DNA of 64,000 nucleotides. Source: Tubulanus polymorphus (taxonomy: Eukaryota > Animalia > Nemertea). Positions 2,258 through 55,264 of the stretch are shown piece after piece. The number at the start of each line of letters is the position of its first letter. The stretch's first letter is position 1. The stretch lies in the NCBI RefSeq assembly GCF_964204645.1, contig NC_134032.1, positions 15,240,275-15,304,274 on the forward strand. Reading direction: 5' to 3'. The notes beneath the pieces were generated by a model that did no database searches, was not told where the DNA came from, and saw nothing but the letters and a program-made list of their open reading frames with translations. The translations under genes and the position numbers were made by a program.

Positions 2258-3960
2258 ATTTCTTTTTCACGCAAACAATAACGATATTACTTTTACATAT
2301 TAACATAACTATTACTTATCACGCCATGCTTATAAAGAAGTACCTATACGAGTGCGTAACTACTACGATGATTACGATGATTACGATCGTCACGATCGTT
2401 TTAAACGCCGGGAAATACAACGGTAAAGTAACGAAATTAATTGTTAAATTGAGCCCGGAACGGTAGAATTACATATAAACGGTATTCGATTACCTATGTT
2501 AATGATACAATATTACCTCAAATTGCGTAATCGTTTACTATTTTCGAAAATCGGATTCATAAAAAAGAAAGTTTCAAATCATTAGATTTTCACGATCGCG
2601 TGGCAACAATAACGAACGTTTTTTACGCGATAATTTCGAATTTCTCTTCCATACGGCAGCGCATATGGAAAATAGAATAACCAATGACGAAGTAAAGAAT
2701 ATCGAATAAAGAATAACGAATTAAAGGCACACGTATTTCTCTATCGCTTCATATACGGATATTCATCCTACTGTAAAGGGTTTCTCGGAAGACGAGCCCA
2801 GTTTGGATTCTACTACAGCAAACTCGCAAACTTGCCGACTCGCAGTCTGGTACAAACTCGTAGCACGAAGCTAAAACGCTCACTCGCTCGTCAGCATCAA
2901 TGATTGCGGCAACTGACTTCCGGTTGCGCGGTTGTCTGACTCGCTCTCTCTCTCCGCGCGAGCAATCAGTGCTCGATGCCGCCGCCGAAAAGACTACTGA
3001 TTATCAGGTATCTATACACGTCGTACATAACGAATTGGCCGTCGAAATCACATCCGCGACCACATGCCGTATAGAATTACCAATCACTCCGAGGCGGTGC
3101 GCAGATTGCTGCTAGGCCGGTGGAGAATCTTTACAATAGTGCCACCTATCGGATACTCGATTGCCACAGTGTAGCTTTATCATTTATTAACCGTATTACA
3201 CATGACTGACGCGAGTGCCACCTATCGGATACTCGATTGCCACAGCAGCAGCTACAATCGGACAAGTGCTTAGATCGGACCCTGTAGCTTTGTCATTCAT
3301 AACAGTATTACACAGATGCCTGATTTCACACTAGCGCCACGTATCGGATACCAGGTCGGAAAATACGCGCTAGTATCTGCGCGGTAACCTAGTGACCACG
3401 CAACAATAGAGTTCGCGAACGTTCGATGAAGAAAGATGACTCCATCCCCCTCCCCTCTGTCTCACGATGAAATCCAATCTAAAGTGTGTATGTGCAACAA
3501 GCAGTGGTAGTTACTCGTGCACCAAGCCATACACCGATAGAAGATAAATGATATGGTGGTTGTCAATTCCAGCCTCATTAAGCCGTCAATTGGTCCATCG
3601 CTATGTGACAGGTGGTTGTTCCGACCCGAGCTGCGGTTATAATTGGAAATAGAAAAAAGCCCTTCTACTGCTTGCGGTGGAAATGCCAGATGAAATATAC
3701 AAACATATATATAATATACTTGTAACTTGCAACGGCTTGAAGGCCACACGTCACTGATCGTCTGTCATATCATTTCAAATAGCGATAATTCCGTCCGTAC
3801 TGGTAGTCAGTGTTGTCCAGGGTCCACTTTCAGTTTCCACTATCAGACAAGTGGTTTGAGTTAGACCCAAAGTTCAGGATTCAGTTCCAAAGATTGCGGT
3901 TAATATTTGACCCAAAGCTGGAAAAAATAATCGCCGGATGGATCTCATTTTACTTTCACT

Positions 3961-6015: not shown

Positions 6016-6369
6016 CATTGCGCTGGCACTTAAACGCGCTTGCGTGTTCGAATACGACTCTCTGTCGATAGGTGTCGCTGATTGCGGCGATATGTAGATA
6101 GAAGTCGGGTTCAATCAGAATAAATAGAACCCGACGATGTTTGATTGCGTCAGCTCATCGCACAGCAGACGAACGCGCGTGCTCTGAATTTATAAAACTT
6201 GTTTCGTTAATTTTCCGCCTAAGCGACGACGTTGCAGAGAATGGGCGGCATCGAATTATACCTGACCTACCCGCGGTGTCACCTACAGTCGCCAGGTCAA
6301 GGTCGAACGTGAACTGTCACGATGGCAGACGATATCCGACTCTGATGGACCTACGAGGACTCCTTGGCA

Positions 6370-6630
6370 TGTTAGGATCCACCAGGTGTCGCAAGTGTGC
6401 AGTAGGATACCAACTAATGCGGCAATAGAAGATTCCACGTGTGGCAAGTGATGATCCACCAGGTGTCGCTAGTGTGCAGTAGGACACCAACTACTGCGGC
6501 AAAAGAGGATTCCACTTGTGGCAAGTGATGATCCACCAGGTGTCGCTTGTATGCAATTGGGGCATCAACTACTGCGGCAATGGAGGATTCCGCATGTGGC
6601 AAGTGAGGATCCACCAGGTGTCGCTAGTTT
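6370..6630 (+). repeat. ~77-bp tandem repeat of the CTCF-motif-like family (also 20390-20450, 24283-24500)
   Basis: GGATCCACCAGGTGTCGCTAG..ACTGCGGCAATAGAGGATTCCACTTGTGGCAAGTGA repeated about 3.5 times. Confidence 0.85.
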
Positions 6631-16296: not shown

Positions 16297-16487
16297 ATCG
16301 CTTCTCGGCCTATTGGCTAAGATCAAAGTGTAGTATCTGTTCTTATCAGCTTAATATCTGATACGCTCCCCATCGGGGAGCTTCGATATTAAACTGATTT
16401 TTGGCACTAGGTGAAGAGTCAGGGGCTTGCTCCGCCTTCGCCACGAGTTGGCCTGGTATGGCAGTACCTCCAGGATCGGCTCACTCC
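16297..16487 (+). ncRNA. RNU2: U2 spliceosomal snRNA
   Basis: ATCGCTTCTCGGCCTATTGGCTAAGATCAAAGTGTAGTATCTGTTCTT 5' end with branch-point-pairing GTAGTA. Stems IIa/IIb (GCTCCCC/GGGGAGC) and III/IV can all pair; Sm site ATTTTTG. Confidence 0.96.
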
Positions 16488-16759
16488 CAATAGGAAAAAT
16501 GAAAGAAATGGAATAAAAATCGTCCTCTTCATGCTATCATAGCATAGCAGATCGCATAAAGAATTTGTCATCAGCATCAGCATCTGTCTGCCCATACAGT
16601 CTAAACGGCAGTATCTATCCGTTTTGAAATAAGCTTAATGAAGGTTTGTTTGCACGCGTCCCCCTACGCACAACTGAATCTCAGGCTAGATACATTGAAC
16701 CGTTTTGAACTTGCAAAATAAAAACAGCAGACATTGTAAACAAATACCCTCCAGCCCTA

Positions 16760-17075: not shown

Positions 17076-17499
17076 ATCCTTCTCATCAGATTTTCAAACC
17101 ACTTGGAATTTCGAGAGAGATGGATTTTCAGTTATAATCACCGGGTTCTAATTGGCTCGTCTCATGTGCTCGTCAACGACTTGATATCCAGGTTCGGTAA
17201 ACCCCGAGACGGTAATTAAACACCTCAGTGGTATGTTCAGAATTTAATAACTCTCACCGAACACTATTAGAGTGCGCACACCGGGCGCACACGGGAGCTG
17301 CGCACACTGGGCGCACATCGCTAATGTACCACTGAGCTCCCAGTTCCACAGTGCAGGGCCCCGTTTCAAAATTCCACAATTCTAAACCAAGTTCCACAAT
17401 CCTGGACCCAGCACACTACTTTAGGACCCTGTTCCACATGTCTGGATCCAGTTCCACAGTTATAGACTTAAAGTTCCAGTTTTGGACTATGTGCCACCG

Positions 17500-18135
17500 T
17501 TTTGGATTCAGTTCCATAGCTCTGGACTCAGTTTCACTTCGGACCCAGTTCCACAGTTCTGGACTCAGTTCCACAGTTGTGGACTCAGTTCCACAGTTCA
17601 GGACTCAGTTCCACAGTTCTGTACTCAGTTCCACAGTTCAGGACTCAGTTCCACAGTTCAGGACTCAGTTCCACAGTTCTGGACTCAGTTCCACAGTTCT
17701 AGGCTCAGTTCCACAGTTCAGGACTCAGTTCCACAGTTCAGGACTCAGTTCCACAGTTCAGGACTCAGTTACACAGTTCTGGACTCAGTTCCACAGTTCA
17801 GGACTCAGTTCCACTGTTCAGGACTCAGTTCCACAGTTCAGGACTCAGTTCCACAGTTCAGGACTCAGTTACACAGTTCTGGACTCAGTTCCACAGTTCA
17901 GGACTCAGTTCCACTGTTCTGGACTCAGTTCCACTGTTCGGGACTCAGTTACACCGTTCTGGACTCAGTTCCACAGTTCAGGACTCAGTTCCACAGTTCT
18001 GTACTCAGTTCCACAGTTCAGGACTCAGTTCCACTGTTCTGGACCCAGTTCCACAGTTCAGGACTCAGTTCCACAGTTCAGGACTCAGTTCCACTGTTCA
18101 GGACTTAGTTCCACAGTTCTGGACTCAGTTTCGCA
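17500..18135. repeat. 20-bp satellite (GGACTCAGTTCCACAGTTCW)n
   Basis: About 30 copies. Confidence 0.95.
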
Positions 18136-19015: not shown

Positions 19016-21199
19016 ACACTGCAATGAATATAGCAGCGCCGGTGATAAAATTGAATAAATGCATTTGAAGCTTAAGTTTTTGATGATAGCCGGAAGCTAT
19101 GTACATGTGAGAGAGGGAGAGCTCGCTCGCGAGCGCAGACGGCGAATTGAGACTGAATCAGCAGCAGCCGACACTGAAAGTGCCAAACGATGAAAGCTTT
19201 TTGCAATCATCAAATATGAATTTACATTTAGCGGGAGAACGAATCAGTCTCAAATTGACGTCTGCCCGCGCATACCTATATATGTATATATGTATGTATG
19301 ATAGCCATTTCTTCTTCGATTGTTAAGTGGAAAGCCCCGCGGGAGACACAACTCAACAAAGCGCCATCATAGAATTGTCCTTGAATTGCAGTAGTGGTAA
19401 GTCAGGCATAGAAAAAGGGATCGATTGCTTTACCTTCACTTTATCGATTACATACGGTAAAAATATCGACAAAGTAAAGAAGTTTCTTAACTATTCGCCG
19501 ATTCGACTTGAGGAGAGTTGTAGGCTAAATCCTTTAAATATCAGTACAGAACTGATGTTATATCGGATGTTGAGTCGATTTTCGTTCGGGGTCGAGTGAC
19601 ATTGAATGTCCGCTCGGTGGCGCTAGTGTGACGTCAGTCGCATACGTTTCATACACTTTAGAGACTAGCACCTAGTGTGGCAGCGCCAGTGTAAAGTCAG
19701 ATTTAATTAGGAAACCCTCGCTTACTGTGGCAATTGAGGACCCGCTAGGTGGCACCATTGTTAAGTCAGACTTAAACGTTCAATTAGGAAACCCTCGCTT
19801 ACTGTGGCGAATGAGGACCCGCTAGGTGGCACCATTGTCAAGTCAGATTTAAACGTTCAATTAAGAAAGTTAACCCTCGCTTACTGTGGCAATCGAATAT
19901 CCACACGGTGGCGCTAGTGTGAATTCGGTCGGTGAGGAGAGCCTGTTAGCACTCCCCTTGACATGGACAGAAAAAAACTCTGCGTTTTACATATGAGCAT
20001 ATTTCCTACTTTAGAACAAGCTCCTCATGTGTTATACGGGATGAAACTCATGCTCATTTGGACAGAGATCGGTTTTTGCTTCATTCAGTTCGATGAACAG
20101 CGCGCGACGGAGACAGAGTCCCAGTGATCAAATTCTCCACTCGAAAAGCCGAGAGTGTATCGTCGTGTAATACGTGAACAAGGAGGCAACTGCGGCAGTC
20201 GAATGTTGTTGCAGATATCAATTACGGTTGTCTGAGTTTCTGTCACGATGAAATTAAATCAAGGACGAACGATATGAAATGCGCTGCGATATAATGGAAA
20301 AAGCTACGTTCATTTTGTTCATTTTGAAAAATTCGAATCACGAAAGATACATTCGTAGGTAGGAATGTGGGATATCGGGCACAGCTACTAACTGTGGCAA
20401 TCGAAGATTCCTCGTATGGCAGGTGAGGATCCACCAGGTGTTGCTAGTAGATAGTTGGTTCAATGTCTTCTAAATTTCAATAAAAACTGAATGAACTTTT
20501 CTCTCACTTAATGTAACAACGATAATCTGTTAATCCTGCGTCCTATAGTATTTTCTATAGACACAGGATTAACAGATTATCGTTTTTATCCGATGAGCCG
20601 CCCCCAATAGCAGGCGTGTATTTGAACGAACTCTGTCGAACCGCGAATCAATGTTTACAATATCATCCGCAACATCCAGCCATAAAAACATCCGATTCAG
20701 GTATAATTAACTTCGACAGGAAACCGTAACGCGATTCAATAAACGTTTTAACTATCGGGTTGCTCCGATAATTGGGTGGCGGCTCTAGTAGCATTGAGAA
20801 CCAACGACTTAATGCAATCACGCAGAGTAGCTATCTATACGTATCATGCTGTTTATTGCCATAGAGCGCTGTTCGGTTAATGGCGATATTTATTCTAAAA
20901 AGCGAACAAAAAAAGTTGACGGAATCGTTCCAGTAAAAAATAAGTGTCGACATATCATTATAACTGACGTTGGCGCGTCGATTCTCTAGTTTGTGCTGCC
21001 TTCTGGTGGGGCTAATGGAAAAAAAACCGGATATAAAGTTGAGGGATAATCTGGTGGTGGTAATTCGTGTGTCTGAAACTGACTGAGGATCACAGCAGGC
21101 TATAATAAGAAGGGCTTGCGTCAGTGTTTTGCTGACAAGTAGATTAGGTTTTCTTGCTGGCTTTTCGGTCTTCATAATGCATCGGTTCAGCTTTTTATT

Positions 21200-23388: not shown

Positions 23389-24824
23389 ATTTTTTTCTTC
23401 AATACATTGCCACTGTATCCGGTGTTTGGAGATAGTTTTAAGATAACTCGACGATAATGCCGAACAATGAAGTCCGACAATATTTCCTTGAACTAGTGGT
23501 ACATTTTTTCGACCATATTCGAATAGTCATCGTCTCAATTCAGTAAACATTTTCGGTAAAACTTTTAATTTCGTGGTTATTGTAGAATTCTCTTGATATT
23601 CAGGTTGCAATTTCTAATAATATCTAGACCGACACGATTCTCAAGCAGTGATTATCATCAGCATCACGTTAGGTCGCAGACGACATCTAGTGTTTACGAT
23701 CTGTCCACCATTTTGAGGTCACTATATCCGTTCTCTTCTGACCGGTGAGATTTTGACCTTCGCAGCGCGATATATTGACCACTCGGAAACGTCAAAACGC
23801 AAGTTATTTCGGCGATCAATCACGAGCACTGTGGTGTATCGTGAGCTCGGACGGGTCGTGTGTGTAGTCTGTTAATAAATCTCTCAATAGAAACAAATGA
23901 AGCTTGATAGTCGGTAAAGGGCCATTACCGACACACGGAGATTGCATTTCCTTGTCGTCGTTAATGTTTCTTCCCCCCTCTCTCTCTCTCTCCATCGGCC
24001 ATCAGAATTGATCTTCCCGTTACCACTTACTTGGTCGTGCTCTTCGAAACTTCCAGTAATAAAGATAACGGTCCGTTTTTTGCTTTAATTCGCTGTTGCG
24101 TTGATTGCGCGGTATTTACGCAATCTTCCGTCGTCTGAAGATTGATCGTCGTTCCTCGCTAGACGGAGATCATGAGAGCGAGTTTATCGGCTTTTAGAGG
24201 CTTGTTACAAAGAACTTAGTCAAATTGGTTCCGCCTAACAGTAGGGAAGTGGTTTCGCTATCCCTGCAATACATGATTCCAATTGTGGCAATTGAGGATC
24301 CACCAGGTGTCGCTAGGGTGCGGTAGGACATCAACTACTGCGGCAATAGAGGATTCCACTTGTGGCAAGTGAGGATCCACCAGGTGTCGCTAGTGTGCAG
24401 TAGGACATAAACTACTGCGGCAATAGAGGATCCACTTGTGGCAAGTGAGGATCCACCAGGTGTCGTTGATGTGCTGTAGGACATCAGTTACTGCGGCAAT
24501 AGCTGATTACAAAAGTTCGAGATCAGAATACTTGGAACTGAAAGTTATTGATATTTTTGCTACGCCGTGTTTCCCGTTTTATCGATCGGTGTTTTGCTAC
24601 GCGCTGTATTCGGTAATTCGGTAATGCTAATTTCCGCACGGAAACATCTGCGTCCTCCAATCATTGAATAAAGAAAATTTGTTTTTCACTGCACAATCAC
24701 CGGAACCGGAACACGTTGTAATTCCCACGTGATCGATAACGTACACGTTTTACGAACTCCATTTACAATAAGATTTATTAATTTTAACCAGACAATGTCC
24801 TCGTTCGGAACAGCAGGTTTTCTG

Positions 24825-25699: not shown

Positions 25700-26035
25700 C
25701 ACTTGCGCCACCTAGCCGATCCTAAAAAGTCCATCTATCAGATCCTCGATTGCCACAGTAATACTCTGTATGTGTAGAATACCAATTTCTGACGGTAATG
25801 CCACCTAGCGGATGCACGATTGCCACAGTAGCACTCTGTATGTGTAGAAGACATACTTCTGACACCAGCGCCACTTAGCGGATGCACGATTGCCACAGTA
25901 GCACATTGTATGTGTAGAAGACATACTTCTGACGCTAGCGCCACCTAACGGACCTCCGATTGCCACAGTAGCACTCTGTATGTGTAGAATAATGACTTCT
26001 GACGCTAGCGCCACTTAGCGGATCCTCCATTGCCA
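25700..26035 (-). repeat. 70-bp tandem repeat, one CTCF-like motif per unit
   Basis: Minus strand ACTGTGGCAATCGTGCATCCGCTAGGTGGCGC.. repeated about 5 times. Confidence 0.85.
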
Positions 26036-27183: not shown

Positions 27184-28168
27184 GGCTGATCGATTGCTAG
27201 GCCTTGTCGTTGTGACCGCCATTTGATAAAGTCTGGAGACCGAAACAAAGAGATTTGGTGTCAGTCTTATCAATTTTTGAAAAGGACTCAGTTCCAAAGT
27301 ATTTACATATATCTAAATGTCAGTATTTCCGCTAGTTTGCGCGCCCCCTGGTGACAATGTATGGAAGCTACCGACGAAGGGCACGAAGTGTCCATTGATG
27401 TTGACATAAAGTGGCTGTATCGACCGCTACCACAAAGTGCGGCGGCACGACCCGCACTAGTCTCTCCAGCGCGGCATCATTAGAATCGATACGTGCTTTG
27501 TGTCGTCAACAGCATTACCTTGAGGTAAACACGGTGTTTTATTAGGTCCACTGGGTTTTACACACATTAAACAAACGCAAAAATACACTTTCGGTTTATT
27601 GACAGGGAGCCGGTTAGCTCTTAAGGTTCGGAGCGTGTCGTACTGAGAGGATTTGCCGGAGGCATCCCAGGTGTGGCGATTCTGTAATATCGTACCCTGA
27701 GGCGACTTGGTATAACTCGGAGCCACCCATCTTCTTAAATCCGGAACGGATTTCCCAGATGTTGCAGTACGGGTTTAAGTGGTTCGATTCAAGATGGAAC
27801 GGACCAATTTTTAAACAATTATTTTTTTCCGCTCCGGTCAGAAACGAATGAATTTAGAACGGACTAAGCGAAAAGCAACAGCAGCGGCGGCGGCGGCAGC
27901 GGCAGCAGCAGCAGTCTCTATCGAGTATATTCAGCAGAAATAAATCTCCTCTCGCTTGACGAAAGCTTCTTTTGAGAGTTATTTATAAAAGACAGGCTTT
28001 ATTTGTTTAATCTCCCGTTTGATAAAATGTATTTTCTTCTTCGAACTTATGAAGTTCAATCTATTTGCACATCTCCACGCGACAGATATAAACTGTGTAA
28101 AAAACATTGTAACAACGTTGTAACAATAGGATTAAATTCAACCATAAGAATAACAGATTCTGAAATGT

Positions 28169-30513
28169 TTCCTCGAGCTAGTGTAGTTTATTCAACGTTT
28201 CGACTTTATCCTAATAGTCATCTTCAGGAATACTGTATTCCTTGAGCTAGTGTAGTTTATTCAACGTTTCGACTTTATCCTAATAGTCATCTTCAGGAAT
28301 ACTGTATTCCTTGAGCTAGTGTAGTTTATTCAACGTTTCGACTTTATCCTAATAGTCATCTTCAGGAATACTGTATTCCTCGAGCTAGTGTAGTTTATTC
28401 AACGTTTCGACTATATCCTAATAGTCATCTTCAGGAATACTGTATTCCTTGAGCTAGTGTAGTTTATTCAACGTTTCGACTTTATCCTAATAGTCATCTT
28501 CAGGAATACTGCATTCCTTGAGCTAGTGTAGTTTATTCAACGTTTCGACTTTATCCTAATAGTCATCTTCAGGAATACTGTATTCCTTGAGCTAGTGTAG
28601 TTTATTCAACGTTTCGACTATATCCTAATAGTCATCTTCAGGAATACTGTATTCCTTGAGCTAGTGTAGTTTATTCAACGTTTCGACTTTATCCTAATAG
28701 TCATCTTCAGGAATACTGCATTCCTTGAGCTAGTGTAGTTTATTCAACGTTTCGACTTTATCCTAATAGTCATCTTCAGGAATACTGTATTCCTTGAGCT
28801 AGTGTAGTTTATTCAACGTTTCGACTTTATCCTAATAGTCATCTTCAGGAATACTGTATTCCTTGAGCTAGTGTAGTTTATTCAACGTTTCGACTTTATC
28901 CTAATAGTCATCTTCAGGAATACTGTATTCCTTGAGCTAGTGTAGTTTATTCAACGTTTCGACTTTATCCTAATAGTCATCTTCAGGAATACTGTATTCC
29001 TTGAGCTAGTGTAGTTTATTCAACGTTTCGACTTTATCCTAATAGTCATCTTCAGGAATACTGTATTCCTTGAGCTAGTGTAGTTTATTCAACGTTTCGA
29101 CTTTATCCTAATAGTCATCTTCAGGAATACTGTATTCCTTGAGCTAGTGTAGTTTATTCAACGTTTCGACTTTATCCTAATAGTCATCTTCAGGAATACT
29201 GTATTCCTTGAGCTAGTGTAGTTTATTCAACGTTTCGACTATATCCTAATAGTCATCTTCAGGAATACTGTATTCCTTGAGCTAGTGTAGTTTATTCAAC
29301 GTTTCGACTTTATCCTAATAGTCATCTTCAGGAATACTGCATTCCTTGAGCTAGTGTAGTTTATTCAACGTTTCGACTTTATCCTAATAGTCATCTTCAG
29401 GAATACTGTATTCCTTGAGCTAGTGTAGTTTATTCAACGTTTCGACTATATCCTAATAGTCATCTTCAGGAATACTGTATTCCTTGAGCTAGTGTAGTTT
29501 ATTCAACGTTTCGACTTTATCCTAATAGTCATCTTCAGGAATACTGCATTCCTTGAGCTAGTGTAGTTTATTCAACGTTTCGACTTTATCCTAATAGTCA
29601 TCTTCAGGAATACTGTATTCCTTGAGCTAGTGTAGTTTATTCAACGTTTCGACTATATCCTAATAATCATCTTCAGGAATACTGTATTCCTTGAGCTAGT
29701 GTAGTTTATTCAACGTTTCGACTTTATCCTAATAGTCATCTTCAGGAATACTGCATTCCTTGAGCTAGTGTAGTTTATTCAACGTTTCGACTTTATCCTA
29801 ATAGTCATCTTCAGGAATACTGTATTCCTTGAGCTAGTGTAGTTTATTCAACGTTTCGACTATATCCTAATAATCATCTTCAGGAATACTGTATTCCTTG
29901 AGCTAGTGTAGTTTATTCAACGTTTCGACTTTATCCTAATAATCATCTTCAGGAATACTGTATTCCTTGAGCTAGTGTAGTTTATTCAACGTTTCGACTA
30001 TATCCTAATAGTCATCTTCAGGAATACTGTATTCCTTGAGCAAGTGTAGTTTATTCAACGTTTCGACTATATCCTAATAGTCATCTTCAGGAATACTGTA
30101 TTCCTTGAGCTAGTGTAGTTTATTCAACGTTTCGACTATATCCTAATAGTCATCTTCAGGAATACTGTATTCCTTGAGCTAGGTGTAGTTTATTCAACGT
30201 TTCGACTATATCCTAATAGTCAGCTTCAGGAATACTGTATTCCTTGAGCTAGTGTAGTTTATTCAACGTTTCGACTATATCCTAATAGTCAGCTTCAGGA
30301 ATACTGTATTCCTTGAGCAAGTGTAGTTTATACAACGTTTCGACTATATCCTATAAATAGTCATCTTCAGGAATACTGTATTCCTTGAGCTAGTGTAGTT
30401 TATTCAACGTTTCGACTTTATCCTAATAGTCATCTTCAGGAATACTGTATTCCTTGAGCTAGTGTAGTTTATTCAACGTTTCGACTATATCCTAATAGTC
30501 ATCTTCAGGAATA
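28169..30513 (-). ncRNA. 69-bp satellite, 34 copies, each a minimal type I hammerhead ribozyme motif
   Basis: Minus-strand unit: TATTC-CTGAAGA-T-GACTAT-TAGGAT-A(T/A)AGTC-GAAAC-GTT-GAATA-aactacactagctcaaggaatacag. Core CUGAnGA and GAAA, stem I TATTC/GAATA, stem II, palindromic ACGT stem III. The tandem repeat is certain; ribozyme activity is inferred. Confidence 0.82.
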
Positions 30514-31130
30514 TGTGTATTAAACTAAACATGTGATTGCCTCCGATAAACTGTAATCGGAAAAAGTAATTGGGACAATTATCATTTGAAATCCATTTAT
30601 CTAAATCAAGAACAAGTTATTTCTGCTTTTTTCAAATCTCATTTCGCATGATGTTTATCGGAAAAATGTCAACCACGGCCATTGTTGAAGAAATATTATC
30701 AACCGCAGCCATTGTTGAGAGACGTTGTTTCAAGCGTTTTCTCAAATGAAAACTGGCATATCATTGATGTAGTACACGTGAAGTCTACGTGTTTATGTCT
30801 TACGTCTTTAAGTCTTACGTGCCATGTCACGTGTTTACTGATTGGTAAACATGCTTAAAAGTAGGCCTTATTCATGGACAGCTCCGAAACCCGTCCAATT
30901 CCTCACCTGCCAGAGCAACTCCGAAACCGTGGATGAAACGTTTTTTTTTTTTACATTTGGTGACAATCTCATTTTGGCAGTGGTTTCGACGTGGTCGACT
31001 CAATATATGACTCATAAGGATCTTCTTAGGGCTCATTATGAAATCTATTAAATTCAATATTTAATGTCTACAATATACTATCATATTTAGTGACAAAATA
31101 TCGAAAAATATTCACCGCCGAGGGCTGAAT

Positions 31131-33919: not shown

Positions 33920-34290
33920 ACTCCGGTTCCACAGTTCAATTCAACTTGTTCCACTTTGGCACCAGTTCCACAGTTCTGGACCCAGTTCCACAGCTTTAGA
34001 CTCAGTTCCACAGCTATGGACTCAATTCTGCAGTTCTGGACCCAGTTCCACAGTTCTGGATCCAGTTCCACAGTTCTAGACTCAGTTCCACGGTTCTGGA
34101 CTCAGTTCCACAGTTCTTGACTCAGTTCCACAGTTCCGGACCCAGTTCCACAGTTCTACACTCAGTTCCACAGTTCAGGACCCAGTTCCACAGTTCCGGA
34201 CCCAGTTCCACAGTTCTTGACTCAGTTCCACAGTTCGAGACTCAGTTCCACAGTTCTTGACTCAGTAACGAAGTTGTGTGGACTCAGTTC
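33920..34290. repeat. 20-bp satellite (GGAYYCAGTTCCACAGTTCW)n
   Basis: Same family as 17500-18135. Confidence 0.92.
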
Positions 34291-35264: not shown

Positions 35265-36490
35265 TTCATGAGCCAAGACTGGTCTTAAGTTGTTAGATTG
35301 GTTATAGAACCAAAATGAGCTTAGACTGGTCTTAAGTCGTTAGATTGGTTATAGAACTGAAATGAGTTTAGACTGGTCTTAAGTTGTTAGATTGGTTATA
35401 GAACCAAAATGAGTTTAGACTGGTCTAAAGTTGTTAGATTGGTTATAGAACCAAAATGAGCTTAGACTGGTCTTAAGTTGTTAGATTGGTTATAGAACTA
35501 ACATGAGCTGAGACTGGTCTTAAGTTGTTAGATCGGTTATAGAACCAAAATGAGCTTAGACTGGTCTTAAGTTGTTAGATTGGTTATAGAACCAAAATGA
35601 GCCAAGACTGGTCTTAAGTTGTTAGATTGGTTATAGAACCAAAATGAGCTTAGACTGGTCTTAAGTTGATAGATTGGTTATAGAACTAAAATGAGCCAAG
35701 ACTGGTCTTAAGTTGTTAGATTGGTTATAGAACCAAAATGAGCTTAGACTGGTCTTAAGTTGTTAGATTGGTTATAGAACTAACATGAGCTGAGACTGGT
35801 CTTAAGTTGTTAGATCGGTTATAGAACCAAAATGAGCTTAGACTGGTCTTAAGTTGTTAGATTGGTTATAGAACTAAAATGAGCTGAGACTGGTCTTAAG
35901 TTGTTAGATTGGTTATAGAACTAAAATGAGCCAAGACTGGTCTTAAGTTGTTAGATTGGTTATAGAATCAAAATGAGTTTAGACTGGTCTTAAGTTGTTA
36001 GATTGGTTATAGAACTAAAATGAGTTTAGACTGGTCTTAAGTTGTTAGATTGGTTATAGAACTAAAATGAGCTGAGACTGGTCTTAAGTTGTTAGATTGG
36101 TTATTGAACTAAAATGAGCCAAGACTGGTCTTAAGTTGTTAGATTGGTTATAGAATCAAAATGAGTTTAGACTGGTCTTAAGTTGTTAGATTGGTTATAG
36201 AACTAAAATGAGTTTAGACTGGTCTTAAGTTGTTAGATTGGTTATAGAACTAAAATGAGCTGAGACTGGTCTTAAGTTGTTAGATTGGTTATAGAATCAA
36301 AATGAGTTTAGACTGGTCTTAAGTTGTTAGATTGGTTATAGAACTAAAATGAGCTTAGACTGGTCTTCAGTTGTTAGATTGGTTATAGAACTAAAATGAG
36401 CTTAGACTGGTCTTAAGTTGTTAGATTGGTTATAGAATCAAAATGGGTTTAGACTGGTCTTAAGTTGTTAGATTGGCTATAGAACCGAGC
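35265..36490. repeat. 47-bp satellite, array 1
   Basis: GAGCTTAGACTGGTCTTAAGTTGTTAGATTGGTTATAGAACTAAAAT repeated about 26 times. Confidence 0.96.
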
Positions 36491-37033: not shown

Positions 37034-37938
37034 CGACTTAATTCTATGAGACAATTTCAAAAACTAAGAGAGTAGTGACGTTTGGACTCAATTCTATGAG
37101 ACATTTTCAGAAACTAAGAGAGTAGTGACGTTTAGACTCAATTCTATGAGACATTTTCAGAAACTAAGAGAGTAGTGACGTTTAGACTCAATTCTATGAG
37201 ACATTTTCAGAAACTAAGAGAGTAGTGACGTTTTGATTCGATTCTATGAGACATTTTCAGAAACTAAGAGAGTAGTGACGTTTAGACTCGATTCTATGAG
37301 ACATTTTCAAAAACTGAGAGAGTAGTGACGTTTAGACTCGATTCTATGAGACATTTTCAGAAACTAAGAGATTAGTGACGTTTAGACTCAATTCTATGAG
37401 ACATTTTCAGAAACTAAGAGAGTAGTGACGTTTAGACTCGATTCTATGAGACATTTTCAGAAACTAAGAGAGTAGTGACGTTTTGACTCAATTCTATGAT
37501 ACATTTTCAGAAACTAAGACAGTAGTGACGTTTAGACTCGATTCTATGAGACATTTTCGGAAACTAAGACAGTAGTGACGTTTAGACTCGATTCTATGAT
37601 ACATTTTCAGAAACTAAGACAGTAGTGACGTTTTGACTCAATTATATGAGACATTTTCAGAAACTAAGAGAGTAGTGACGTTTAGACTCGATTCTATGAG
37701 ACATTTTCAGAAACTAAGAGAGCAGTGACGTTTAGACTCGATTCTATGAGACATTTTCAAAACTAAGAGAGTAGTGACGTTTAGACTCGATTCTATGAGA
37801 CATTTTCAGAAACTAAGACAGTAGTGACGTTTAGACTCGATTCTATGAGACATTTTCAGAAACTAAGAGAGTAGTGACGTTTAGACTCGATTCTATGAGC
37901 TATTTTCTAAAACTAAGAGAGTAGTGACGTTCGACTCG
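37034..37938 (-). repeat. 50-bp satellite, degenerate hammerhead-like unit
   Basis: About 18 copies; minus-strand unit AGTTT-CTGAAAA-T-GTCTCA-TAGAAT-YGAGTC-TAAAC-GTC-ACTACTCTCTT. Confidence 0.9.
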
Positions 37939-39913
37939 AAAAAAAGTTTTTTGAGAAAAACTTTGAAATCACTCATAGAATTGAGTCTAAAAATGTCGAA
38001 ACCGTTCATTATTTCGTATCACGAACATTGTTTTAATTTTACTACTGTTCTTACTGCCGATGTCGGCGGCGTTAAAACAGACTGCAAACAGTACTAATTA
38101 CACTGGGAGTCTATTGCCGTTAAATCTGCATAAAACGGCTATACCAGTATTTACACGAACTTCTGTTCAAATTGTTGCGATAAAATATATCAGAATATAT
38201 CAGAACGATCTAGGTCGCTGGTCGCATCTGTTCGTAATGGTTCCAATATCTGTGACAGCACCACAAAAAGAAAGTCTTAAAAGTCTGAGAAATGGTTTTG
38301 TACTGTTCGTCTGGGCACGTCACGCAAATAGACATTGACGAAACACTCGCCGAGTCCGTGTTGTAAAGATGATATAAAATACTAAAAATGAAGGGTCTCA
38401 TTGAGCTGAACACGACACCATCGATGTCCGGTTCGATTTTACAAGAGATTTTGTGGCGTCAAAGATGCATACGCCATCTAGCGGAAATTTGTTCGATTAC
38501 TTTTTCAAGTTGCAATAGATTTATCGATCTAAATGAAAACTAGATCAACACAATCAATCAATAAGAAATAATTAGTCGATGTTTTATTCGTCAAATTCAA
38601 GTTTTATTTTTCTCGACCAATTAAGATCTACCCTATAAATAACCTTAATCTAGCCTAGATAACCTAAATCCAGTCTAAATAACCTAAACCCAGTATTAAT
38701 AGCTTTAATTCAGGCCAGGTCATCTCTTGGTCGTGTTAGTTAGATATAAGAATCGAAGAACCTAGTTTCGAATAAACAGTACCCTCAACCTTTCCTGTCC
38801 TTCTACAGCGCCCCCTTTTAGTTCAGTTAGACGAAACAAAGTCAGATTCAAAAGGGCTAAAGGAGGGTGCCCGACATTCACCCTGTAGCCTGGAGGGGGA
38901 TGCCTGACAAATTTCCTGTTAATTACTGTTAATTACTGAGATTTATTCATTATCATATGTTATTATCTTTATTTTCAGATATCTATCGATTCGATATTCA
39001 CACGATCACGAATCGAAGATCAGCAGCGACGGATCCAACCGGCACTAGGAATATCCGACAAAATATTCCTCGAACAATTGAAATAAAAAACGCGAAATTC
39101 CGTGAACAAGTCGAAGAGGATTAAGTTTGATTTGGAATAATTGAGATTATCGTGCTGTTTATAATAGAGATCAATTTTGATTGTTGCTGACGCGTAGAAT
39201 AACACGAGTAGAATATAGTCGATGATAACAGTGCGAGTTGTTCCCGGATTAATTACGCTGGCAACGTTTTTCAATTAACGCTCGAGATTGGCGGCGACGG
39301 CGGCGGCGGTGCAACGTATACAGCGCTTTAATCAACGTTAAAATCGACGCCAACACGCAACAGTTACACATACGTTAACGCTGCATTAAAAAACACAACG
39401 TTAACAACCGCTATTAAACAATACCCGCCATTGTTGCCTAAACGTGAACGCGTCAATTTCTTTTTTGTAGAAATGACACATTTTCGGGCCAAATCGTTCG
39501 GGGCCAAGAGCTTGAACCGAACGCGGCTTTTCCATAATAAAATGTGACCGCGATGAACTAGAGATTCTAGCCGAGTCACGTGATAATAAATATGGTAATT
39601 TATGCGTAAAAGAATTACAGGCTGTTCGATCTAAAAAAAGAAAAAACTGCGGTGATGTACATAATTGTGTATTTATGTCGTATTTTAGTATCACGGTGAA
39701 TATCCGGGGAGCTGTAGGGGTTAACGCTTCACTGATATTGTTTCGTTAATCATACGTTCGTTGTTGCAAAAATGAACGTCTTCAGAAACCGTCACCGGCG
39801 TTGATTTAAAGCGTCGATTGTTGTAAAACAAATATGACGTTCCGGGACGTTTTATAAATTTGTTTTCTTTTCGTGTGACGTAATACACGTAAACGCTGGA
39901 TTTATAATCTAAG

Positions 39914-41380: not shown

Positions 41381-41744
41381 AACGAATATATCTCCTTTTT
41401 GTGCACGCGCGTTGGTTTTTTTCGAACAATTTTTTCGTTAATGTCAACACAAAAAGCCGCAGCTATAGTCAATCTGTCGTATTGTAGGCCCCCAACTATC
41501 ACCGCTGCTGGTACCGGTTACTCGATTTACCGGATAAATAGCACACATCGCGCGCATATTCACAGATTGCGGCACACGTTTTAAGGATGTACACGATTTA
41601 AGTAACGATTTAACGGTTGGTTTTTGTCATCTTTTACGAATGTGATTTATAAACATCGCCATGACCGGCAGTTGGTGAGAGGGTCATAAAGGTAACCAGT
41701 GGATAGTTGATAATACAAAATGGCATTATTAACACAATTTTTAT

Positions 41745-42090
41745 CTGGAACCAGTTCCAAAGCTCTGAACCCAGTTCAACAGTTCTGGACTCAGTTCCAC
41801 AGTTCTGAACCCAGTTCAACAGTTCTGAACCAAGTTCCACAGTGCTGGACTCAGTTCCACAGTCCTTGACCCAGTTCCACAGTTCTGAATCCAGTTCCAC
41901 AGTTCTAGATCCAGTTCCAAAGCTCTGAACCCAGTTCCACAGTTCTGGATCCAGTGCCACAGTTCTGGATCCAGTTCCACAGTTCCGGACTCAGTTCCAC
42001 AGTTCTGGACTCAGTTCCACAGTTCTGGACTCAGTTCCACAGGTTCTGGATTCAGTTCCGCATTTTGTAACTGTGGAATTGAATCCTTTA
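41745..42090. repeat. 20-bp satellite ending in an inverted copy
   Basis: Same family as 17500-18135; closes with GGATTCAGTTCCGCA..TGTGGAATTGAATCC. Confidence 0.9.
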
Positions 42091-47665: not shown

Positions 47666-48637
47666 TTCTTGGTGACAAGCCTTGATTAAAATCTCTATAT
47701 AGACTTCGCTCGACAGTTGCACTGACGTCACCACCGCGACCTATAGACCTCCGAAGGCGTCGAGTGTATTGTACATGTGCGTAGAGTACGCGTGACCTTT
47801 CTGTCATCGGTGTACCGCCTGCGCGGGCGTCCGTTAATCATCGTGACGTCCATTATGACGCGTTAAGTGCCATGGCGGTCGAGAGACAAAATTTAAGTCA
47901 AAATCGAAGAAATGAGAGGTGTGAATTGTCATAGTGCCATATTTCAAGGACAGAAAGAAATTGATATTCTTCATTTTTAATTATTCGTCTTTAAAAACAT
48001 CATCTACAGAATACATAGAAATTCCATATCGATTGAAGTGGATATATGAAAAAATTCATATCTTTCTAAGTTGCGCTGCCAGCCCGAAGCACAAACACTT
48101 CCTAAACATATTTATGGAGTAAGTATCTAAGATACCTTAAACCTGATACAATGCCTAAAAATCAATCGTTCGCAAAGCCAGTACCTGCGGCAGCAGCAGC
48201 AACAGCAACGGCACCAGCACCAGCATCATCAACACCGGTACCTAGCACCAGTACCAGTAAAATTAGCACCAGTACCACCAGTACCAGCAAAAAGTACCAG
48301 TAATGGCAGCACCAGAAGCAGAACCTCCCTATCCACGGTACTTCAATATTGATTTAACAAACCATTCTAATACGTCAATTAAATTAGATCGCGTGCATTT
48401 GGAAAAAAATCCAATCGAGTCTGGATTTCACTAACAATCTCTCTCCGGGTGCGGCGGCTGTTGTTGTGAGGCAGAGGGTTTTATAAGTGCCACTCGCTAC
48501 CGAGGTAGAATCATTATCACGATCGATACCGCAGTTGTTATAACACAAGCTAAGTTCGTGTTGAGGGTCGACCTCGTGAACCCGAATCAAAATGTTATAA
48601 CCCACCGGAGTCGATACTGGAAAAATGGACAGGTCCT

Positions 48638-49805
48638 TGTTAGATTGGCTATAGAACTAAAATGAGTTTAGACTGGTCTTAAGTTGTTAGATTGGTTATA
48701 GAACTAAAATGAGCTTAGACTGGTCTTAAGTTGTTAGATTGGTTATAGAACCAAAATGAGTTTAGACTGGTCTTAAGTTGTTAGATTGGCTATAGAACTA
48801 AAATGAGCTTAGACTGGTCTTAAGTTGTTAGATTGGCTATAGAACTAAAATGAGCTTAGACTGGTCTTAAGTTGTTAGATTGGCTATGGAACTAAAATGA
48901 GCTTAGACTGGTCTTAAGTTGTTAGATTGGTTATAGAACTAGAATGAGTTTAGACTGGTCTTAAGTTGTTAGATTGGCTATAGAACTAAAATGAGCTTAG
49001 ACTGGTCTTAAGTTGTTAGATTGGCTATAGAACTAAAATGAGCTTAGACTGGTCTTAAGTTGTTAGATTGTTTATAGAACTAGAATGAGCTTAGACTGGT
49101 CTTAAGTTGTTAGATTGGCTATAGAACTAAAATGAGCTTAGACTGGTCTTAAGTTGTTAGATTGTTTATAGAACTAGAATGAGCTTAGACTGGTCTTAAG
49201 TTGTTAGATTGGCTATAGAACTAAAATGAGCTTAGACTGGTCTTAAGTTGTTAGATTGGTTATAGAACTAAAATGAGCTTAGACTGGTCTTAAGTTGTTA
49301 GATTGTTTATAGAACCAAAATGAGTTTAGACTGGTCTTAAGTTGTTAGATTGGTTATAGAACTAAAATGAGCTTAGACTGGTCTTAAGTTGTTAGATTGG
49401 TTATAGAACTAAAATGAGTTTAGACTGGTCTTAAGTTGTTAGATTGGTTATAGAACTAAAATGAGCTTAGACTGGTCTTAAGTTGTTAGATTGGTTATAG
49501 AACTAAAATGAGTTTACACTGGTTTTAAGTTGTTAGATTGGTAATAGAACTAAAATTAGCTTAGACTGGTCTTAAGTTGTTAGATTGGCTATAGAACTAA
49601 AATGAGCTTAGACTGGTCTTAAGTTGTTAGATTGGTTATAGAACTAAAATGAGCTTAGACTGGTCTTAAGTTGTTAGATTGGTTATAGAACTAAAATGAG
49701 TTTACACTGGTCTTAAGTTGTTAGATTGGTTATAGAACTAAAATGAGCTTAGACTGGTCTTAAGTTGTTAGATTGGCTATGGAACTAAAATGACCTTAGA
49801 ATGGT
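48638..49805. repeat. 47-bp satellite, array 2
   Basis: Same unit and orientation as 35265-36490; about 25 copies. Confidence 0.96.
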
Positions 49806-50977
49806 CCAAAGTAATTAGAATGGTACTATTCATCCACCGGGTATCTTAAACCAACCGTAGAGCAACCACACATTCCCAGATGAGATCTGAATATTCGAAA
49901 GTCTAAAGAACTGGGGAGACCTGTGCAGCTGCGAGATATTAATAATAATAATACAAACCGTTAAAAATGTTTATCGATTTTCAATTTTTTCGTTGCTGTT
50001 CTTTTGGTTTGAATTATTTATATAAATCCACTGGTCCAATTTGTTATCATGCGCGGTGCAATTCCTCTCTGTTTTCAGCCCACGCACATAGTCCTGGGGT
50101 CGTATGCAAATTACATTCAAATGGGATACGCACGGTAGATGGCGCCACATTACGGTGCGGTGACCTATCGGGTATATAGTACATGATCGCATTTAAGATG
50201 GCGCACAGATGGCGCTACGATGCAGTGTTGTACAAAAACTACGCGTTAGAAAATTCTTAAAACTTTGCTCGTTGTCACATTTCGCAGACGGCGGCGATGG
50301 CGGCAGAACCTCCAGTTGACAAGACGATATTAAATTTCAAATTCCTTTCATACCGCGTTGACTTTTCGCGTCGCGTGTCAATCGCGGTACCCGATAACTC
50401 CGCGCGCCTGAACGCCGTATCTCAATAATATCTCGGCCAAGTCGAGAATGAAGTTAACTCGGATTATTATTACGATTATTATTATTACCATCGAGCTTCG
50501 CTTGGTCGCGTTTTTATTTTATCAATCATTTTTCGCGCAGTCGTCGCGGCCACGTAGGTTTAAATGATGTCGACGTGTTGTATGAGAATTAATTGAATCA
50601 GAGACGTCGCACGCTGCACACCCGACGCCGCTTCGCGCCTGCTGCGTGCGGTACTTTCATCTCCCAAGATTCAATCAAATAACCGAGAATTTTTAAAAGA
50701 TCCCCGAGATTACTTTTTCTAGTCGAGCGATAAAACCGAGAACGAAAGTTTGGTTGCAATTTCGAATAGTATCGCGAATTCCAGGGTCTTGTGGAGAAAG
50801 TTTGTAGGGATTTCGTTGTTTTACCAAAAGCGTCACTATGGAAACCGTGAGACTAAAAACACAATTCACGTTCAGGGCTTCCACACCCTAGCACCCACCA
50901 GCCTACCTGCACTTGAGACCGTTTTAGTATGAATGAAATATTGAAATTGAAAATACGGAACTTTTTCTCCAGAAATG

Positions 50978-53254: not shown

Positions 53255-54342
53255 CGGGATCAGTTCCGCAGTTCAGAACCCAGTTCCACAGTTCTGTGGA
53301 CCCAGTTCCACAGTTCTGTGGACCCAGTTCTACAGTTCTGGATCCAGTTCCACAGTTCTGTGGATCCAGTTCTACAGTTCTGGATCCAGTTCCACAGTTC
53401 TGGATCCAGTTCTACAGTTCAGGATCCAGTTCCACAGTTCTGGACCCAGTTCCGCAATCGAATATATGAATGAATATATTTATTTTGCACAGTAATTACA
53501 AGATCCAGTTCCACAGTTCTGGACCCAGTCCCACCGTTCTGGACCCAGTTCCACAGTTCAGGACCCAGTTCTACACTTCAGGACCCAGTTCCACAGTTCA
53601 GGATCCAGTTCCACAGTTCTGGACCCAGTTCCACAGTTCAGGACCCAGTTCTACAGTTCAGGACCCAGTTCCATAGTTCAGGACCCAGTTCCACAGTTCT
53701 GGATCCAGTTCCACAGTTCAGGACCCAGTTCCACAGTTCAGGACCCAGTTCCACAGTTCAGGACCCAGTTCCACATTTCTGGACCCAGTTCCACATTTCT
53801 GGACCCAGTTCCACAGTTCAGGACCCAGTTCTACAGTTCAGGACCCAGTTCCATAGTTCAGGACCCAGTTCCACAGTTCTGGATCCAGTTCCACAGTTCA
53901 GGACCCAGTTCCACAGTTCAGGACCCAGTTCCACAGTTCAGGACCCAGTTCCACATTTCTGGATCCAGTTCCACAGTTCAGGACCCAGTTCCACAGTTCA
54001 GGACCCAGTTCCACAGTTCAGGACTCAGTTCCACAGTTCAGGACTCAGTTCCACAGTTCAGGACCCAGTTCCACAGTTCAGGACCCAGTTCCACATTTCT
54101 GGATCCAGTTCCACAGTTCAGGACCCAGTTCCACAGTTCAGGACCCAGTTCCACAGTTCAGGACCCAGTTCCACATTTCTGGACCCAGTTCCACAGTTCA
54201 GGACCCAGTTCCACATTTCTGGATCCAGTTCCACAGTTCAGGACCCAGTTCCACAGTTCAGGACCCAGTTCCACAGTTCAGGACCCAGTTCCACATTTCT
54301 GGACCCAGTTCCACAGTTCAGGACCCAGTTCCACAGTTCAGG
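53255..54342. repeat. 20-bp satellite (GGACCCAGTTCCACAGTTCA)n
   Basis: About 50 copies with one short interruption. Confidence 0.95.
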
Positions 54343-55264
54343 AAAGTATGCAGCTTGCTGAGAGACTGGTCAGTGATAGATACTATATCTTATCGGTGAC
54401 AGCATCTGACACGATACGGATTACCCTAGCGATAAGTATCACCATCCATCAACACGACAGTGTCTCTACTTACTGAGAGAGTGCATACTGCCGATAGACT
54501 TTTTAGAGGGGGGAGGGGGAGAGGAGGGGAGAGGGGAGAGGAAGAGGGCGAGGGGCAAGGAGAGAGGGAAAGGGAGGGGAGAGGGGAGAGGGACGAGGGA
54601 GAGGAGGGAAGAGAGGGTAAGGGAGGGGAGGAGAGAGGGGGTTGGTGTTATGGTACGGTGTCGCTTGTGTGTATTTCGCTATGGTACGGTGTCGCTTACG
54701 TGTATTCCCTTATCATTGACCAGTAATTACCGCCACCTAGCGAACAACAACAAATATCACCGATCATACCCCACCAACAGGATCAAAATGGCGGATAGAT
54801 GTTACAATTTTGTTACCGACCATCACCGCCACCTGGTGAGCGATTAAAAATGGCTGATGCATATAAAATTATTTGCGACTGTTCACCTGTAACAGAAAAT
54901 GGGAGTTAACCACACCCCCCTTCCCCCTCCGCCTCCCCCTCCGCCTCCCCCTTCGCCTCCCCTCCGCCTCCCCCTCCCCTTATCGAGGTCCGTTCATTAG
55001 TTTCACGCTCGGTCGCCTCTACTCAGATATTTCTCGTTGCGGACCGGAAGTCGCACTATCAAACCGGAAATTACTGCTACGCTACCGTTTAAACGTATGG
55101 TTGGCGTATGCGGGGTTTATCCGAGTCGTTTGACGGGTTGTTTGAACTAACGCCGACGCAGGCAGACTACGTCGATATGCGTCCCGTTTGTACCGTGGAT
55201 TTCATCTTATATGAGACGTTTGATGTGTGATGATCTCTGAGCGAGAGGTGAGGGAGAGTGGGTG

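Follow-up and report, generated by a model that had tools for sequence, protein, structure and literature searches.

The array of 34 hammerhead units on the minus strand of this Tubulanus polymorphus DNA (28169..30521 of the window, i.e. of the whole 64,000-nt stretch that was analysed) is probably a minisatellite that arose from an end-piece of a Penelope-like element (PLE) and was amplified locally; its ribozymes are predicted to be mostly inactive, and it is probably no source of 69-nt circles. The original prediction of 34 tandem 69-nt units agrees with the result of TRF, which gave a period of 69, 34.0 copies, and 97% matches. The array had also been said to start exactly at 30513; this is indeed the 5' edge of helix I in unit 1, but homology at the junction extends 6 nt more, to 30521, and a remnant of the junction stub (AATACA, 30516..30521, minus strand) lies ahead of unit 1. 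The window is animal DNA, with 13 tRNA genes, U2 and U6atac snRNA genes, and 94 TRF tandem-repeat rows, and two tRNA-Met genes bracket the array.

Each 69-nt unit is composed, on the minus strand, of a 44-nt minimal type I hammerhead and a 25-nt linker with AAUAAA, so that 44 of the 69 nt, about two-thirds as first proposed, are ribozyme. By motif reading of the minus strand, the hammerhead of unit 1 occupies 30470..30513. Its helix I is formed by a 5' arm at 30509-30513 and a 3' arm at 30470-30474; the core CUGAAGA lies at 30502-30508, the extra U at 30501, the helix II hairpin at 30483-30500, GAAA at 30479-30482, and the palindrome ACGU at 30476-30479, with the predicted cut after U17 at 30475. 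The MFE of this motif is -8.4 kcal/mol. This reading reproduces the minimal hammerhead first described on the minus strand, with its 5-bp helix I, CUGAAGA, extra U, helix II, GAAA, ACGU palindrome, and GUU triplet. The consensus of Penelope-type minimal hammerheads has an extra base between positions 9 and 10.1, a G10.1-C11.1 pair, and a palindrome that replaces helix III (PMC4209133). The unit likewise has an extra nucleotide after A9, a G10.1-C11.1 pair, a palindrome at 15.2-16.2, and a short helix I; judged by its sequence, it is a Penelope-type minimal type I hammerhead.

A hammerhead scan of the minus strand supported the motif: 31 of the 34 units, which fall into 11 types, passed under strict settings, and the core (CUGANGA, GAAA, NUH triplet) is intact in 32. 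Units 4 and 5 (30165..30303, minus strand) failed through a core-breaking A9-to-C change and unit 3 through a helix I mismatch. Rfam, in gathering and E<=10 modes, found no hammerhead match in the array, presumably because its models expect helix III. Relatives with the same core were found as solo motifs in animal-looking metagenome contigs. In the pattern used to search for them, the core and most of the stem II positions relevant to it (much of stem II) were prescribed, whereas the outer three helix I pairs were free to vary; in the resulting alignment of seven non-independent rows, three helix I pairs had changed on both sides and 95.7% of cells were paired. Helix I thus covaries among these relatives, by compensatory changes in its outer three pairs. 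Among viral contigs, a loose pattern gave four coding-looking matches and a tighter one gave none; in prokaryotic genomes there were 18 pattern matches, of which 0 had both helices and a valid triplet. In one metagenome contig (L007), two minimal hammerheads in the same orientation (498-543 and 1785-1830) lie on either side of an ORF that runs on the opposite strand and has a cysteine motif of IBR-like type.

The distribution of the element was investigated by matching one unit together with its upstream flank to the contigs of four sequencing runs; the figures given here are from the best run. The hammerhead was covered by 2,086 contigs, and the upstream flank, a single-copy sequence outside the element (30530..31090), by one contig with a depth of 23 and 0 differences, which also spans the flank-to-array junction with 0 differences. 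At the 5' edge of helix I, 272 contigs diverge into long unrelated sequence, usually after CAG. At unit position 64, 75 contigs depart into a common tail, ACATTTTCGG, and then diverge. The last array unit departs from the repeat at position 64 as well, and the non-unit tail beyond it (28160..28168, minus strand) matches the tail of the dispersed solo element. The window also contains a decayed solo copy with tail, adjoining a tRNA-Gly gene (23473..23534, minus strand). These contig edges, the tail of the last unit, and the decayed solo copy together indicate that the parent was a dispersed element of about 75-80 nt, a hammerhead followed by about 35 nt after the cut site, which is present at several hundred loci or more, summed contig depth being no copy number. 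An inverted tail-like motif, not significant alone by alignment, lies on the 5' side of the decayed copy at ~23543-23557, and an isolated tail-motif match without a recognisable hammerhead lies at 39474.

Across the genome, contigs show tandem joints of the element at 42, 48, 50, 65, 68, 69, and 71 nt and opposite-strand (head-to-head) joints at its 5' edge, and GUC replaces GUU in many copies. Solo relatives were also found in another study of this organism and, there with a different tail, in a further organism. PLE ends are known to be 5'-truncated, with a tail of 30-40 bp and with inverted 5' copies (PMC8557442), reverse transcription in PLEs starts downstream of the hammerhead (PMC11167929), and truncated PLEs leave solo minimal hammerheads that are mostly dispersed (PMC4209133). 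The element described here extends about 35 nt beyond the cut site to the end of its tail, and it has a sharp 5' edge and opposite-strand joints. Its motif type and tail architecture thus point to a Penelope origin. No Pfam match to RT or GIY-YIG was obtained in the 39 stop-to-stop frames of 26-33.9 kb around the array, the metagenome relatives L005-L010 are solo hammerheads with no linked Penelope ORF, and blastn and tblastx of the relatives' loci against the window found only the hammerhead in common.

Both edges of the element carry short motifs. Many copies, and relatives L005 and L010, have a YAG immediately ahead of helix I (30445-30447 in the array), which resembles a 3' splice site. 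An intron of D. virilis ends at helix I (PMC4209133), which the CAG at the 5' edge may recall, as a lead only. At the other edge, two organisms with otherwise different tails have a CATTTTYGG-like motif at the tail end (here 28160-28168); this motif is able to base-pair with the catalytic core and might act as a signal for RT start or for binding. The idea of the tail as a conserved anti-core strand was rejected: the consensus forms 9 bp, but the pairing does not reach significance for the window copy or for three of four relatives.

Variation among the units bears on how the array grew. Shared variants show a three-unit higher-order (lag-3) pattern (p=0.005) and are graded 5'-to-3' along the array (polarity, p=0.002); DNA-level duplication after insertion is thus required. 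The variant with a mismatch in stem II, correctly described at the outset as the commoner one in the array, occurs in 21 of the 34 units versus only about 13% of contig depth genome-wide, indicating that the poorer variant spread here. A recurrent C-to-U change in stem II had been credited with keeping a U-G pair. The wobble is kept, but the change is confined to three nearby units (9, 10, and 13), and, since any C-to-T opposite G yields a wobble, it gives no sign of selection; it is best explained by a single mutation that duplication then multiplied. The array also ends in a non-unit tail and so is not a plain copy of a 69-nt circle, which would hold unit sequence only. Instead of unit sequence alone between TSDs, as expected from a circular template, a 3' non-unit tail, higher-order variants, and no TSD were found. 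No convincing TSD surrounds the array; a direct match of 9 bp, placed 32 and 72 nt outward, is estimated to be no better than chance. Two further ideas were discarded: an origin of the array by back-splicing (there is no GT donor and CAG is kept) and a reading of the downstream flank as an inverted decayed copy (p=0.36).

The probable course of events begins with a short PLE end-piece, a minimal hammerhead with a tail of about 35 nt, as one of hundreds to thousands dispersed in the genome. Its 5' end would carry a short stub that is complementary to the helix I arm of the element and folds back on it; a fold-back of this kind produces AGGAAUA-CAG-UAUUCCU. This stub and the tail 69 nt downstream have AGGAA-type microhomology in common, and a template jump or slippage between the two may have given a head-to-tail dimer; such a jump may also account for the recurrence of a 69-nt period elsewhere in the genome. 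The array would then have grown locally to 34 units through unequal exchange or slippage, as the structure of the variants suggests. In a transcript of such an array, the helix I arms are computed to be hidden in junction hairpins.

In computed folding, the junction hairpin AGGAAUA-CAG-UAUUCCU (30438..30454, minus strand) is repeated at 33 of the 33 junctions, and it is antisense to the next unit's helix I 5' arm together with C3 and U4. When six units are folded as one transcript, the 5' arm of helix I is computed to pair with this decoy with a probability of 1.00 and with its true partner with a probability of 0.000, the decoy forming co-transcriptionally, as soon as the arm is made. The computed penalty of the dimer fold versus the ensemble was 23.9-24.6 kcal/mol; with shuffled linkers it was 10.4+/-3.8 and 14.0+/-4.0 kcal/mol (1 of 300 as high), and with a solo-type junction 10.5-11.8 kcal/mol. 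These are secondary structure energies, in which hammerhead tertiary contacts and proteins are ignored. As the stub is present in every junction, the helix I 5' arm and C3/U4 would be locked in a 7-8 bp hairpin, from which largely inactive ribozymes are predicted; on this folding model, the array is probably self-silenced by its own junctions. The suggestion that neighbouring units pair as dimers holds on paper, where a nested geometry is topologically possible, but in each internal unit helix I and C3/U4 are computed to be taken up by the hairpin. Minimal hammerheads are known to show low activity even as dimers and trimers (PMC4209133), and the PAc hammerhead of Anolis needs its protein to cleave, with cleavage unnecessary for insertion (PMC11167929). 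Among the runs recorded to contain the stretch there is none of RNA, which by itself does not prove silence.

A second minisatellite in the window serves as an internal control. Located 6.5 kb away and outside the array, it consists of 18 copies of a 50-nt unit (37041..37939, minus strand) headed by an inverted copy (~37966-37991). Its unit aligns to the array's element (p=0.001) and still fits a relaxed hammerhead shape, as 0 of 40,000 shuffles do, with a broken core: G12 is lost in 16 of the 16 units listed, and G8 is lost as well. Since this sister array was amplified with a dead core, hammerhead pieces are amplified here whether or not they are able to cut. Other repeats are abundant in the neighbourhood. 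Between 1879 and 63936, a tRNA cluster of nine tRNA-Gly(GCC), two tRNA-Met, and two tRNA-Ala genes lies among many minisatellites, with U2 at 16297-16489 and a U6atac match at 19923-20033. A 47-nt unit forms two arrays of ~25 copies each, 13 kb apart (35268-36486 and 48637-49824), in neither of which the hammerhead motif was found. A 20-nt minisatellite family occupies at least four places (17372-18130, 33963-34266, 41744-42059, and 53257-54343). Tandem units of 70-77 nt with a GCGCCACCTAG/CCACCAGGTG-like core, which we take to resemble CTCF sites, are found at 3137-3250, 6365-6628, 19705-19892, 24266-24502, and 25741-26035.

Other origins of the array have to be weighed against local amplification of an end-piece. 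It would be a non-autonomous mobile multimer if uncut linear array RNA had been re-inserted by a Penelope RT from the tail and had then expanded locally, the ribozyme being a passenger. The tail at the 3' end of the array and several contigs in which the same kind of junction is spanned between different flanks are consistent with such a course, as is the finding that, in vitro, PLEs have uncut RNA as their main substrate (PMC11167929). However, the lengths (65, 68, 69, and 71 nt) and letters of the junctions vary among contigs, as expected from separate origins or old age, and with neither a TSD nor an RNA run on record we regard this origin as unlikely. Chance resemblance or an assembly artefact is hardly credible: Rfam finds nothing and short contigs do not check the copy number, but a shuffled 69-mer passes the strict scan, on either strand, only once in 300,000 times, relatives show compensatory helix I changes, a contig crosses the flank-to-array junction with 0 differences, and the variant pattern is structured.

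The original prediction had gone further and proposed that the transcript is cut into 69-nt circularisable monomers. Dimeric hammerheads, perhaps aided by a PLE protein, would then release monomers that become circles and are reverse-transcribed into arrays. The complete cores of 31 units and the nested geometry would allow this, minimal hammerhead dimers and trimers show some, albeit low, activity (PMC4209133), and protein-assisted cleavage is known (PMC11167929). Nevertheless, the proposal is quite improbable and was not upheld: the junction decoy hides helix I, the solo-element tail that ends the array would be absent from a 69-nt circle, the higher-order pattern of shared variants and the spread of a degraded one point to local DNA amplification, the circle itself is computed to be weakly structured (-3.5 to -7.1 kcal/mol) unlike the highly paired circles of retrozymes, and no RNA run is on record. 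There is an equally slim chance that the junction hairpin is a switch opened by a Penelope protein or chaperone, so that transcribed arrays release 69-nt monomers or circles and short multimers spread between loci as a minimal Penelope parasite; such circles would rank with the smallest known that are made by ribozymes. Several points count against the preferred reading, a minisatellite born from a PLE end: no autonomous Penelope ORF is linked to the hammerhead in the flanks or in L005-L010, cores are complete in 31 of 34 units, though the array is young, no TSD was found, and the folding energies omit tertiary contacts and proteins, while a PLE hammerhead needs protein to cleave. Even so, the array behaves as a minisatellite of this kind, which is already known, and on the folding model it is most likely inert as a ribozyme array.

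Tandem hammerhead families derived from PLE pLTRs, with units of 51-972 bp and up to 300 copies, are described in a preprint by Li, Clavereau, and Pollet (bioRxiv 10.64898/2026.07.22.740005), which sampled 31 vertebrates and four invertebrates. With families from 51 bp published there, the 69-nt unit is not unusually small, as had been claimed. The same preprint proposes local amplification of a PLE terminus as the origin of such arrays and reports that, of 9 dimers from Xenopus arrays, 8 showed no cleavage. To this, the present analysis adds the evidence of tail and variants against a circular template, the predicted self-silencing junction, and the sister array with a dead core. As it stands, the array illustrates clearly how a satellite is born from the end of a Penelope element, and it supplies a definite mechanism at the junction; this mechanism may explain the recurring period and why many computationally 'active' retrozyme arrays fail to cleave (8 of 9 in that test). 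It also warns that tandem hammerhead motifs should not be counted as retrozymes. If cleavage and circles were real after all, the size limit of ribozyme-made circular RNAs would fall far below the ~150 nt reported.

In this array, as in those of Li, Clavereau, and Pollet, a type I hammerhead, canonical or minimal, is found in successive units of a tandem repeat. The 34 units found here exceed the usual maximum of seven given in their preprint, the available part of which does not describe an antisense junction. With at least two consecutive complete hammerheads and a motif MFE below -5 kcal/mol, the array falls under the operational definition of a non-LTR retrozyme as given there (Li et al. 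2026); it departs from the biological definition (Cervera and de la Pena 2020) in two features, a canonical type I motif with tertiary contacts in units of 150-450 bp and an array copied from a circular template. That definition also includes expression as monomeric linear and circular RNA. Like the classical non-LTR retrozymes (newt satellite 2, Schistosoma Sm-alpha, coral, mussel, axolotl; PMC7229834), it consists of low-GC head-to-tail hammerhead repeats. Those retrozymes, however, have canonical hammerheads with loop 1-loop 2 contacts, units of 150-450 bp, and proven circular RNAs, whereas here the hammerhead is minimal, the unit is 69 bp, the junction is predicted to block folding, and no RNA run is on record. 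The Poseidon PAc element of Anolis (PMC11167929) similarly has its hammerhead upstream of the tail where insertion ends fall; its ORF starts at stem II, whereas the AUG at that place in the array closes after 5-9 codons. The PLE hammerheads of Cervera and de la Pena 2014 (PMC4209133) share the extra base 9/10.1, the G10.1-C11.1 pair, a long helix II, a helix I of 4-5 bp, and the palindrome; the motif described here differs in having been amplified at 69-nt spacing, with no linked RT/GIY-YIG ORF seen in the flanks or relatives.
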